A stretch of DNA of 63,276 bases, the filler included, from Olpidium bornovanus S191 (taxonomy: Eukaryota > Fungi > Olpidiomycota), in NCBI GenBank assembly GCA_017911155.1. It is 34 parts of 34 records of this genome, joined end to end, with 100 filler letters (N's around TTAATTAATTAA, not from the genome) between each part and the next. Parts side by side here need not be neighbours in the genome. Positions count along the whole stretch, not along the records: positions 10,190 to 14,782 come from JAEFCI010006613.1; 33 more parts are not named here. One strand, 5' to 3'. Shown one piece after another: positions 9,342 through 15,266 of the stretch. The notes beneath the pieces are model-generated. The model did not search any database and was not told where the DNA came from. It worked only from the letters and a program-made list of their open reading frames with translations. Position numbers and translations under genes: made by a program. Within the stretch, counting starts at the first letter, position 1. Each line of letters opens with the position of its first letter.

Positions 9342-10276
9342 GTGAGATCACGTGATGATTGAGCAGGTTACAGAGGGCGGGGGCCGTGAAATAAAAGAAG
9401 GTAACGCCCGGCCGGGCGGAAAGGAACGATAACGCTTGTACGGGATACACCCGAACAAGAACGGCCGTCTTCTCAACCGCCAACCGCGCGGCGCTCCTCG
9501 CCTTCGCAACTCCGTCGCCATCTCAAAGCTCTACCGCGCCATCTTTTTGCGTGTTGCGCTCCTCATTTTTCTCGTTTGGCCATCCTCAGACGTGTCCGCT
9601 TTTACCTGTGATCGCACTCCCTTGGGGGAAAGGGGGGGGGGGGGGGCGTTCCCCCTTTTCCAGGGGAGCCGTCCCAGCCCACCGGTGAATGGCTCATTGA
9701 AGAGCAGGTCGGAAGCCAGCGAACGCATCAGCGAGCACATCTGCTTCGGCAATCGTACCAGGGAGTTTGGCGAGCAACCCGGCGATGACGCCGCCTTCGG
9801 CAGGGGCGCCGGCAGGCGCGCGAGCTTTGGCAGCAAGCGGATCAGTTTTGGCGGCAAGCGCGCCAGTTTTGGTATTTTGGGATGTCGAGACGGCTAGCGT
9901 CAAGACAAGCGGCAACACTGCCAGTCCACAGATCAGGTCCACGCGGACGCCATGTTCCCCTTGATTTCCATGATTGCCTTTCTGACCCGCATTCGCGTCA
10001 CAGGCTAATTTCTACTGCCAAGGCCACTTCCAGCGGCGTCAAGGTCGTTTTTTTTTGATGCGAAAGCCTGCCTTCTCATTTACAACGGCNNNNNNNNNNN
10101 NNNNNNNNNNNNNNNNNNNNNNNNNNNNNNNNNTTAATTAATTAANNNNNNNNNNNNNNNNNNNNNNNNNNNNNNNNNNNNNNNNNNNNGAAAGGGGAGG
10201 GGGGGTTGGTCTGGTATGTAAACTGCGCATAAACGAAAAAATTTCCCGACCTGCTAAAACCCTGGCAACAGAATTC

Positions 10277-12209
10277 ATGCCCGCAGCGCACGCAGCTGCT
10301 GCGCTGACCGCATCCGCTGCGGCGCGCCGGCGGGCCCGCCACGCGGCTGCCGCGCTCCTGCCGCCCGTGCTGCCCTACCTGCCGCGGCATACCTGTCCCT
10401 TGCGGTCCGCGGTGTCCCCCTCCCTGCCGGAAGCAAACGCTGCCGCTGGTGTCCTTCCCGAGCCTTTCCCGGCCTCACACTGGAAAGCGACGCTGCAGCG
10501 CGGTGCGAAGTGCCTCCTGGTCCCGACGGAAGCGGCGGCGCAGGAACTGGTGGATGTCATCGGCCAGGAGCGGTTCAACGGCGCCACTGTCGTGAACCTG
10601 AACGCAGGTATGAGCGCCGTTGAGGCCCGGCGTTTTTGCTGCCGAAGCGGCGTATGCATTGAAACGTCAGGCCGTTGGTAGTCCGGTCCCTCGGAACCCT
10701 CAGAACGCCTGTTTGCGCCGTGCAGGTCCGGGAAACTTTGCGCGGTTCCTCTACAACAATACGGCTGCCAGGGTCGTTTGCGTGAACTTCGCCAACGTTT
10801 TCGACACGGAATTGCAAGTACGGCTGCGCGCTGCAAAAAGAGGAAATTTGATGTTTCTCGAGACGGAAGTCGTTTCGAGGGCGAAGGAGAACTCACGGCC
10901 CTGTTGCGCGTTTGTTTGACCCGCAGAACATGTGCGACGCGTCCAACGGTAGGATATCAAGCGTTGTCGCTAATCCTGTACATTACCTCAGGTGGCTCAG
11001 CGGCCCCTCGGACCTGGGCCACCTGGAACAACGCTCGTGGTCGGCAGGTACCGCGCGGACCCGCTTCGGTTTCTCTACAATTTGCCCGCCTGCCGCCTCT
11101 CACATGCTCATTATCATTTGTCCCAATGCGACTCCTTAGATCGACCGCCTTTACTCGTTTTGGGTTCGAATTTCACGAGCAGTGTTCACCACACGTGCTT
11201 CCTTTGCATCGGGTTGATGACCGAGAGATCGGGAGTTTGGAAATACGGCCGGGTGCCGCTCTACTTGATCGTACCAGACGTCAATGTTAGTTCGATTGCG
11301 GGGCAGTGCTTTCTTCGAAATGGGCGCCCGGGCGCACGAACTAAAATCTCATTGTAGCTCGTTCTGCTCGTTGCTTTAATGCACATGGTTATAGGACCTG
11401 CGCCGTCTGAAAGATGATCACGGCGAGACAGCCGGCAGCCGTATGCGGGATGTGCTTCCTTTCCGGATCCTCGACTACATCGCGGACATATCGATAAGGC
11501 CGATCAGCGCGGCCTTCCACAGAATCGGGAGTTCCAGAGCAGTTGTGAGTGGTTGTGCGGAATAAGTAATCGCTGGGTATGCGCCCTGCGCCCGGCCGCG
11601 TGTTCCTCAAGCTGTCAAATTGCTGCCGTCAAATGCTTTAGCAAAACATGTATTTGGTTTCCATCGAACCCAAGCCGATCACCATCGTTCCACGTCAGTT
11701 GGAAATGTGAATCCTTCGTGTGCGAATGCGACGTGGTGTTAATCCTGCGCCTGTTGGCCAAATGTATCTTATGCCTTCTACTCGCCCACAGAAGGAGCAG
11801 CGGGTGTACTACATTATGTCATGAAATCCTTGAATCGGACTCCAAAAAAGCCATTGAGGACTGCCATAACGTATGTCCGTCTTCCGCTTGTTCTTTGAGA
11901 TGATTTTACGTAGGCCGAACTTTCCCGCGAAGCCATCTCTCGCTCTTCTTAACAACTTGACTCTCCATCCTCTTCCCCTCCCCCCTTTCCTCCTCTTCCC
12001 CTCCTCACTTTCCTCCTCTTCTCCCCGCAAACGCGGTCTCACTCACATGCAGGTCGCTTGCCGCTGGTGCCGAGTACATCCTGAGCGACTTCAGCTCGTC
12101 GCCCCACATCAGGCCGATCGACCTGACAGTGGCCCAATTGGTGGAACTCGCCCGGCTGTACGACTGCTGGCCGTTCAGGCCGCCGCTGGAGAATGCGTTC
12201 CAGGAGTGA
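10277..12209 (+). CDS. MTF1: Mitochondrial transcription factor Mtf1 / mtTFB (KsgA-like methyltransferase fold), multi-exon
   Basis: Transit-peptide-like Ala/Arg-rich N-terminus. Spliced VVNLNAG/PGNFAR (SAM-motif remnant), WKYGRVPLYL, LHYVMKSL..PL, and C-terminal SLAAGAEYIL..IDLTVAQLVELARLYDCWPFRP typical of fungal Mtf1. TGA at 12207-12209. Confidence 0.8.
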
Positions 12210-13427
12210 CATCGAAGTGCCGGATAGCGAAGCCAGGCACAGTACCAGCAGTAGGTTGCGAGCAGCGTGATGCGTTATTGACGCCACTTCGCTCGGGAAC
12301 CAGATCTGCCGCTGTACACGCAAATAGACTCGACTCCGCGAAATTCGCCGTCGGTTAGGTTACGCACGCCGTGAGGTCGCAGATCTCCAGCACGACGCCA
12401 GCGGGGCCGCCTCGGATACAGTCGGAACAGAGAATCGCCGTTTAGAAGTGACGGCAATAAGCGTCTTCGCCAATAGCAATCGAGTTTGCGCTGCATATTG
12501 CTGGCTTTTATCACACACGCTCGAGAGCAACAGTGCAGGCGTGATTACGCGGTGCGAAGCGGCGGAATCCGGGCTGGAGTGGCGCTTTTTGAGCTGGCAG
12601 CGGCTAGCGCTGTTTTGCCGCAGGAGAGACTTAGATGCCAAATGTGTGTTTCCAGCGGCAAACGACCATTCGTTGGTGCTTGAGTCTCAGCGATCAACCC
12701 CGGCGGGGCAGCATAAACGACTCCTAAGCAATGCGTCACACCCGCCGAAGGCAGGCACGCGCCCTTCCAGCTCCGGATTGTTCCACAGGGCGGGCTGTAA
12801 GCCCCCAACGACCCTCGCCGCTGGGGAGGAGGTGTTTTGGCACGGGGGTTGGTGACAGCAGCGAAGTCCAGCGCCTGCGCACGGCGTGTTCTGTGGGCGT
12901 GGCGCCGCCGTCCGTTTTCCAGCCGAAATAAAAGAGCTCAGGCGAGAGAGACGCGGGGGGGGGGGGAAGGGGGGGGGGGGAGGGGGGGGGGGGGGGGGGA
13001 GGGGGGGGGAGAGAGAGAGAGAGAGGACACCCGCTGCTTGAAGGAACAGTCACGTGGGCCCGGCAGCCACGGGCGGAGCGAGAATAACGGATATGAAACG
13101 GGAACGCGCGCCGCAGGCAGAAACCTCCATTTCCCTGGACCGCCTGCGTGCCTCCCCCGCATCCGCTTTGACAAAAGACATAAACGTAACCAAAACAAGT
13201 TGCGGCTCGTTGAGCTAACGACGGAGGGGGGAGGCCCGTCGCCGTCGCCTGCTGACCCGTCCTTCTCCCCTGAAACCGCAGATGAGATGTTTTGATATGC
13301 GCTACACGCCACCCTCCGAAAATTAACACCCTGGATAAAATTATATTGGAAGGGGAAACAACAAAAGAAAAAAAAATCGTAAACGGTAGAGGAATCCCCG
13401 GGCGAAAATGCGAACACCCTGCTGCCG

Positions 13428-14684
13428 CTAAAAACGCGAGACCGGTTGCTGGGCCACTTCGTCTCCCGCGAAGCTGACCGACGACGGTCTCCGGTTCACG
13501 GACGTCGCGTGGGGCGCGTCTGCGTCCCAGCCGCGCGTCGCCTCGGCGAACGGCAGCACCATGTCCGGATCTCCCTCCGTGAGCGCCGCAGTCCTGATGA
13601 CCCCGCTGGCCCCGTCCAGGGCGGGTTGCAGGAACGGCGCTGCCTTCGATTTCCTTTTGCGCTCTCCGCCGGGCTTGTCTGCCGGCGAGGCGGCGGGCTT
13701 CCCCGACTCCGGCGGAGGGGGCGACGGCCGCAGCGTCGGGTCCCTCCAGCGGCGGTAGTAGCCGTGCGAGATCAGCAGGACCATCGACACGCCTGTCGTC
13801 GTGAACGTGATTATGATCGACATGTTCACGTCGAGCGGCAGCCCATACAGCCGGACCAGGAACCGGACGCTCAGGTCGCAGTACGTGGAGTCAATTGACA
13901 CGTTCCTGGTGGTCACCTCCAGGAGGAGGAAGTACTCCGGCTGGGAGTGGCGGTGCGGGTATACCCGGTGGCACGGGCTTCCGGACGCGCAGACCCAACT
14001 TTCGACAGTTAACAACGCGAACAGTCCCACGGAGGGTTGGGACGTGTAACAAATTTGTCAGATGTCCGGCATCAGCCGAGAGATCCCGCGTTTACCCGTT
14101 CCTTGTTTTCCTGTCCACTTACTGGACGTTGTTTTTGTCCAGTGACATTACCGGAGCGCCCGAATCCGGCGAGTAAGTCACGCCGTCATCCGCCGCGCCC
14201 CAGATCGGGGACAAACCCGAACCGATTGCGCTGGGATTGTACTTCACGATTTCGTCTGCCGAGAACACCGCGACTTCGTCCCTGCTGGCACCGCCTCCTA
14301 CGACGCGCATCTGGTAGTGGCCCAGGTACGGCGTCGAATTCCCTGCCACGAGGTCGTTGATCACAAACTCGGGTTGGAATGCTAGGGACACGAATGCCCG
14401 GGGTGGAAAGAGCGAAATGTCAGCGTTTCGCATCCTGGACGTTTAACACAGGGCTTCAATACTTTTCGCATCCGACCCCCCCCCCCCCTCCCGTGGTTCG
14501 ACGGGCAGCCGATAAGCGGGCGTTATGGTCGGTAGCATTCGCGCGCACTTGTCTCATAATATATGCACGGCACATCAGGGTCCGGAAGTATGCATCCGGT
14601 GAACATTTTGGGGTCCGGGGTGAATTCCATGCTGATTTTCGGCGGGCAGCCGCTGTATACGTTCATGACGTTGATGGTCTCGGA
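13428..14684 (-). CDS. CATSPERG: CatSper channel auxiliary subunit gamma-like protein, last 3 exons (C-terminal ectodomain, TM helix, cytoplasmic tail)
   Basis: Exons about 14684-14570, 14434-14123 (GTAAGT donor) and 13998-13428. YSGCPP..FQPEFVINDLVAGNSTPYLGHYQMRVVGGGASRDEVAVFSADEIVKYN..SPIW..DSGAPVMS../HWVCASGSPCH..PEYFLLLEVTTRNV..STYCDLSVRFLVRLYGLPL + TM is colinear with recalled human CATSPERG (GCPP..[87 protein letters not shown]). Confidence 0.85.
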
Positions 14685-15266
14685 CTATAATATATAAAAA
14701 ATTAAAGAGCGATCGTGGACGCGAACGCCGCATATGAGTTCCAAGTCCACGGCCAAAAAAAAGGAAAAAAAAAAAAGTAAAANNNNNNNNNNNNNNNNNN
14801 NNNNNNNNNNNNNNNNNNNNNNNNNNTTAATTAATTAANNNNNNNNNNNNNNNNNNNNNNNNNNNNNNNNNNNNNNNNNNNNCATGCGCAGCAGCTGGGG
14901 CAGCAAGCCCGGCCAATCCAACGCACCGTCTCCTCGTCTCCTCGGCCGTACTTTTGGAAGAACGGAGTCCGATGGCCCCAGACAAACTTCAGGCGGTCCG
15001 ACAAGGCGCAGAAGTGCGGTCGGGCGGTTTGCACCAAAAGGACGAGGTATACAATGCAGGATTCGAAAAATACAACAACGTCCTCGGCCCAGGCTCCGGG
15101 ATAATCGCTGTGAGGCGAGCACAAGAAAAGAGAGATGCCGACGACTTGGTGAGTAAAGTGGACGAAGCGACGATCGAGGCCCCGAACAACAAGAGACGAA
15201 ATTCAGAAAAAAAAAATAAGGAATACAGCGGTCTCCGATTAGCAGACGATTCGCCCGCAGAAGCAC

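Follow-up and report, generated by a model that had tools for sequence, protein, structure and literature searches.

The question raised by this locus is whether a contig recorded for Olpidium bornovanus S191 carries a gene for a subunit of the CatSper channel, and, if so, what that gene may say about the flagellum of the zoospore. CATSPERG is a helper subunit of a flagellar calcium channel best known from sperm. Olpidium, a root-infecting zoosporic parasite and plant-virus vector, is the sister of all non-flagellated fungi. As blastoclads, chytrids, monoblepharids, and rumen fungi are already known to have CatSper gamma, its presence in a flagellated fungus would be no surprise. An earlier note, made from the DNA sequence of a stretch of 63,276 nucleotides joined from parts of this genome (the window hereafter), described a "sperm-type" gamma subunit on one of these parts and suggested that, if the host were Olpidium-like, the retention of CatSper would be placed close to the point at which fungi lost the flagellum. 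Here we take up the structure and family of the gene, its relatives, its likely role, and the origin of the contig in turn.

Structure and transcription of the gene

The piece analyzed (window positions 10190-14782, 4593 bases) carries two convergent genes; the features of the gamma gene are collected in Table 1. Splicing of exons A, B, and C gave 321 codons which, translated from the minus strand, contained no internal stop. Both introns were confirmed to the base by spliced contigs of the public RNA-like run X2. The three exons described earlier at 13428-14684, the last two joined across a GTAAGT..AG intron, were thus exact in their coordinates, lie on the minus strand, and agree with the X2 junctions. 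The X2 transcript contig departs from the genome at position 14684 and carries 255 additional letters unlike the piece, the final 30 of which, when their consensus was translated, were in frame and free of stops. Because the transcript continues past 14684, we concluded that this position is a true acceptor and that the gene extends upstream outside the contig. The acceptor is in phase 0, matching that of Sorochytrium. Word depth in X2 was 27-44 over the gamma exons relative to 16 over the neighboring gene. These results demonstrated that the 3' end of the gamma gene is real, spliced, and transcribed.

Table 1. Features of the gamma gene by window position
Feature	Window positions	Strand	Remarks
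Upstream intron, 3' part, cut at contig edge	14685..14782	-	AT-rich, ..TATAG acceptor
Exon A, 136 nt (45 codons + 1 base)	14549..14684	-	Ectodomain; GCPP and two more conserved Cys
Intron 1, 167 nt, GT..AG, phase 1	14382..14548	-	Junction 14381/14549 in X2 contigs
Exon B, 259 nt	14123..14381	-	CATSPERG_C first half; Pfam and phmmer
Intron 2, 124 nt, GTAAGT..AG, phase 2	13999..14122	-	Junction 13998/14123 in X2 contigs
Exon C, coding part, 571 nt	13428..13998	-	CATSPERG_C second half, membrane helix, tail
Predicted TM helix, single	13758..13823	-	Residues 191-212 of spliced peptide; RRWR next
Stop TAG	13430-13428	-	End of exon C frame
3' untranslated region	13118..13427	-	Unbroken X2 contig 13998 to 13118

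Three raw RNA runs (X17, X20, and X23) that carry the same species label yielded zero reads on the gamma gene or its neighbor and hence give no gauge of expression. A further X2 contig (14352-14578, depth 9) is unspliced, spans most of intron 1, and is one base short in a C/G run near 14476; it could be intron retention, pre-mRNA, or DNA in the run.

The convergent neighbor (10240-12812, plus strand) has eight exons separated by seven GT..AG introns of 92-182 nt, all of which are present in a single spliced X2 contig. The coding region, 10277-12209, encodes 375 residues, relative to 211 in the public model of the same span. Its single exons gave no Pfam match; on inspection by eye, the protein resembles a divergent rRNA-methyltransferase fold. 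Lying between the two transcript 3' ends, at 12940-13035, is a long G-run with single A breaks followed by (GA)n; no X2 contig crossed this stretch, and the repeat was skipped in read mapping.

Assignment to the CATSPERG family

The earlier note had proposed a search against the Pfam CATSPERG models, and this search, carried out with exons B and C submitted separately, supported the assignment. Exon B matched CATSPERG_C (PF22846) at profile positions 21-87 (E 2.8e-11, 44.1 bits) and exon C matched it at positions 104-178 (E 1e-12, 48.8 bits), relative to a gathering cut-off of 27.6 bits. As two separate exons exceeded the cut-off on successive parts of the profile, the match is far from chance. 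No other CatSper Pfam family was returned for the exons at E values up to 1. When the exons were compared by phmmer with the sequences of the PDB, exon B matched residues 921-981 of mouse CatSper gamma 2 (7eeb_F; also 9ubw) at E 1.2e-7 and exon C matched residues 1004-1078 of the same protein (7eeb_F; also 9ubw) at E 7.9e-10, so that the two matches are collinear on the gamma chain. With E values of up to 10 allowed, the gamma chains of 7eeb/9ubw were the only sequences found in the whole PDB, and the beta, delta, and epsilon chains gave no match.

An exhaustive HMMER search of 1.84 billion representatives, with exon C as the query, produced 95 hits, and wherever the source gave a gene name that name was CatSper gamma (Nematostella, Priapulus, Mobula, sea turtles, Latimeria). 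Hypothetical proteins or transcripts were hit in the fungi Sorochytrium, Blastocladiella, Catenaria, Cladochytrium, Quaeritorhiza, and Zopfochytrium, and outside the fungi in the holozoans Chromosphaera and Pigoraptor, in Chara braunii, and in Rhodelphis. As these other named sources say "hypothetical," their hits are no independent evidence for the family. The best-scoring full-length hit, P0002 (UniParc UPI00078A6C27, 1888 aa), contains the C-terminal domain and helix twice, in identical stretches, and falls amid animal sequences beside Priapulus in the tree; it looks like a duplicated or mis-joined model.

The motifs listed earlier were all present and in the order given: GCPP; FQPEFVINDLVAGNSTPYLGHYQMRVVGGG; DEIVKYN; WVCASGSPC; PEYF...STYC; and GLPL, followed by a hydrophobic helix. 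In an alignment of 25 homologues, the six cysteines of the peptide (residues 13, 31, 40, 135, 141, and 172) all fell in invariant or near-invariant cysteine columns. The GLP motif is conserved, and after it comes the sole strongly hydrophobic stretch, residues 191-212, with a best 19-residue Kyte-Doolittle mean of 1.84, which aligns with the membrane helix of all the homologues. The helix is followed by RRWR and then by a Pro/Ala-rich cytosolic tail of 107 residues; the outer side has three N-glycosylation sequons. We concluded that the 321 encoded residues comprise the membrane-proximal CATSPERG_C domain followed by a single membrane helix and a tail in the cytosol. When the 25-sequence gamma alignment was the query of a protein search, its own first sequence was the sole match and N-terminal fragments from Olpidium were absent; JGI metagenome contigs, scanned with exon C, gave no relative and no longer copy of the gene.

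Gene structure and closest relatives

The exon maps of three fungal gamma genes, those of Sorochytrium, Cladochytrium, and Zopfochytrium, were rebuilt from their genomic loci. The last three exons measure 136/259/571 nt in Olpidium, 136/229/577 nt in Sorochytrium, 139/253/676 nt in Cladochytrium, and 139/247/550 nt in Zopfochytrium. Placed on the protein alignment, all three Olpidium boundaries, namely the 14684 acceptor (phase 0) and introns 1 (phase 1) and 2 (phase 2), fell at the same codons in the blastoclad and chytrid orthologues of Sorochytrium and Cladochytrium, whose last three exons are the same as those of Olpidium, with identical intron positions and phases. All three boundaries also coincide with exon breaks of the sea anemone Nematostella. 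In Catenaria anguillulae (MCFL01000038.1) both introns are missing and the last 305 residues of gamma are encoded on a single exon; Catenaria has lost two introns that were kept in Olpidium, Sorochytrium, Cladochytrium, and Nematostella. The shared intron positions and phases are an independent confirmation of both the gene model and its orthology. The identification of the peptide as the C-terminal part of CATSPERG, as the earlier note had it, is therefore borne out by Pfam, by the gamma chain of 7eeb/9ubw, by the conserved cysteines, and by the conserved intron positions, and sequence, cysteine pattern, and intron positions all make the Olpidium gene an orthologue of the fungal and animal gamma genes. 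We infer from the relatives that some 13-14 more exons, encoding roughly 650-700 residues (the N-terminal, beta-propeller, and Ig-like domains), would lie upstream, off the contig. The gene neighborhood is not conserved, as the Olpidium neighbor was absent beside the gamma genes of Sorochytrium, Cladochytrium, and Zopfochytrium.

With mouse CATSPERG2 (7eeb/9ubw chain F), the Olpidium protein has in common the membrane-proximal C-terminal domain, the single helix, and the cysteine pattern; identity is about 35% or less, and the Olpidium tail (107 residues, Pro/Ala-rich) is longer and unrelated. The fungal orthologues, Sorochytrium KAL7746813.1, Catenaria ORZ33193.1, Blastocladiella KAI9152507.1, Cladochytrium KAI8808239.1, and Zopfochytrium KAI9325876.1, have the domain in common with it and belong to one gene-tree clade; its identity to them was 33-39% by HMMER over exon C and about 35% at most over some 200 tree columns. 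The Olpidium copy branches outside both the blastoclad group and the chytrid group. Chara braunii GBG73465.1 and a Rhodelphis limneticus transcript share CATSPERG_C with Olpidium and are distant in the tree. The Chara protein (BFEA01000184.1; L005 501-1649) is 382 residues long, contains little beyond CATSPERG_C, and has no introns in the region. As Chara and Rhodelphis carry the domain, the family is broader than "sperm-type" implies; that label, used in the earlier note, overstates the affinity to animals, since the Olpidium copy groups with fungi.

The deposited model and previous surveys

The deposited model of the gene (window 13428-13823, minus strand; L001 960-1355) is an open reading frame of 131 residues which starts from an internal Met within the membrane helix. 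The public protein (P0001) therefore consists of the membrane helix and tail only and does not contain the CATSPERG_C domain, so that domain-based surveys of the Olpidium proteome miss the gene. A like truncation of the gene model has been described for the Olpidium TPPP gene, and the public proteome of Olpidium as a whole is very incomplete.

A 2026 atlas of fungal flagellar proteins treats CATSPERG as specific to flagellated fungi and as lying beyond the minimal flagellum, and states that CatSper components were not retained in every flagellated fungus. Its CATSPERG accession table lists twelve fungal proteins, among them Allomyces KNE61002/KNE71993 and Catenaria ORZ33193, and contains no Olpidium entry (KAG54...). 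Judged by accession prefix, these twelve look like Allomyces, Catenaria, Gonapodya, several rumen fungi, and others, with Catenaria ORZ33193 alone confirmed. The atlas has no Olpidium CATSPERG because the deposited model holds the helix and tail alone. Its authors attribute the low Olpidium count partly to a BUSCO score of 27. In PMC5362262, citing Cai et al. 2014, the CatSper1-4, beta, gamma, and epsilon subunits are regarded as ancient in eukaryotes, with losses in particular lineages; the genomes surveyed included those of Allomyces and Thecamonas. The earlier statement that CatSper is patchily distributed outside animals and missing from non-flagellated fungi agrees with this literature (PMC5362262; 2026 atlas). 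In the literature searched, no paper other than the atlas source was found to name both CatSper and Olpidium. We concluded that the gene is a previously mis-annotated member of CATSPERG in a lineage where one is expected.

Proposed role in the zoospore flagellum

The outer part of CATSPERG, together with beta, delta, and epsilon, forms an extracellular canopy over the four pore-forming CatSper subunits; the canopy is made by the N-terminal, beta-propeller, and Ig-like domains (PF22840, PF15064, PF22851). The gamma subunit of mouse sperm belongs to a set of four single-pass subunits whose beta-propellers form the canopy over the CatSper1-4 pore. Neighboring channel dimers are joined in zigzag rows through gamma-gamma contacts, and channel assembly is thought to require the canopy as an obligate scaffold (PMC9205950, PMC13484710). 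The part of gamma encoded on the Olpidium piece corresponds to the membrane-proximal stem and membrane helix. We consider it likely, arguing from homology, that these are the last three exons of the O. bornovanus CATSPERG orthologue and that its protein is part of a CatSper channel in the zoospore flagellum. We propose that, in the flagellar membrane of the zoospore, Olpidium gamma would assemble with CatSper1-4 and anchor the canopy beside a pore subunit; external or pH/voltage cues might then open the channel to Ca2+, and Ca2+ entry would alter the flagellar beat. An altered beat could serve in turning, in chemotaxis to roots, or in encystment.

A true orthologue might also persist without a working channel, if this reduced, obligate parasite had lost some or all of the pore subunits and had retained gamma as a relic or in another membrane role. 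The short Chara protein gives this some substance, as it shows that the domain can exist in shorter proteins. However, the intact frame, the conservation of all six cysteines, the retained intron positions, and the abundant transcript argue for purifying selection. In the surveyed eukaryotes, moreover, the pattern of gamma presence and loss is that of CatSper1-4 (PMC5362262, citing Cai et al. 2014), and the atlas authors ascribe the low Olpidium count in part to the BUSCO score. We therefore regard a gamma without a channel as unlikely and favor the reading in which gamma belongs to a flagellar CatSper channel.

Origin of the contig

By record, the contig JAEFCI010006613.1 of assembly GCA_017911155.1 belongs to Olpidium bornovanus, and the "Olpidium-like" host suggested in the earlier note is in this sense the right one; the literature also gives the JAEFCI accession and the assembly as those of O. 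bornovanus S191 (PMC7865070, PMC9698843, supplement of PMC13358043). P0001, the public protein of 131 residues that matches the end of exon C exactly, was recorded on this contig alone. A coccidian or a choanoflagellate host, suspected from composition alone, was dropped in view of this record. The assembly (N50 about 2 kb, BUSCO score about 27%) was binned by tetramers and similarity filters from a 187-Mb metagenome of non-axenic zoospores washed off cucumber roots. Because it was binned from a non-axenic culture, contamination needed weighing: the contig might derive from another flagellated eukaryote, such as a soil chytrid, a holozoan, or another protist, which lived in the cucumber-root sand culture and passed the binning.

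In a maximum likelihood tree of the C-terminal region (44 rows, 233 columns), Olpidium fell in a clade with all the named fungal gamma sequences (88/91). In this full tree it paired with Pigoraptor, a long-branched holozoan (89/84), and the animals formed a separate clade (100/99). When Pigoraptor was removed, Olpidium was sister to blastoclads plus chytrids, in a fungal clade that was well supported (95/88). In AU tests, neither the grouping of Olpidium with fungi (p 0.245) nor its grouping with animals (p 0.10) was rejected, so that the tree by itself does not decide the origin of the contig.

Foreign origin would accord with the derivation of the assembly from a binned metagenome, with the pairing with Pigoraptor, and with the unrejected placement on the animal side. 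Against this, the pairing involves a long branch, without which Olpidium joins the fungal clade and with which a clade of fungi plus Olpidium is not rejected (p 0.245). The sequence falls within neither the chytrids nor the blastoclads, and an ordinary soil chytrid contaminant is therefore unlikely; a position outside both groups would also fit a separate fungal phylum. The best PDB match of the neighbor's last exon, although weak (E 0.078), was the yeast mitochondrial transcription factor Mtf1 (1i4w), a fungal mitochondrial factor, at the matching C-terminal position. Moreover, the same sequence recurred almost unchanged in runs from six other studies, which carry one organism label, and in a soil metagenome, as expected for a common root parasite. 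On this evidence a source other than Olpidium is rather improbable, and we hold with high confidence that the contig is truly from Olpidium.

Finally, a decaying pseudogene fragment or a chance resemblance is highly improbable: the gene is visible only in part and one X2 contig is unspliced over intron 1 (14352-14578), but the 321 codons are open, two independent matches exceed the Pfam cut-off, the cysteines and intron phases are conserved, and the spliced transcripts are deeper than the unspliced piece.

Implications

The finding fills the Olpidium CATSPERG gap in the 2026 survey of fungal flagellar proteins, and it shows that the absences reported for the Olpidium genome are partly annotation artefacts. 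If the assignment to a flagellar channel is true, the fungal lineage nearest to the loss of the flagellum still keeps a CatSper channel. Retention of CatSper up to the loss of the flagellum would be an attractive evolutionary reading, for which the evidence is the C-terminal third of one subunit. Whether Olpidium keeps a complete, expressed CatSper channel which steers the zoospores that find roots and carry plant viruses is, in our estimate, an evenly balanced matter; if it does, the channel would provide a defined molecular handle on zoospore guidance. The gene allows one to ask whether the steering of the zoospores of a root parasite and virus vector uses a sperm-like Ca2+ channel.
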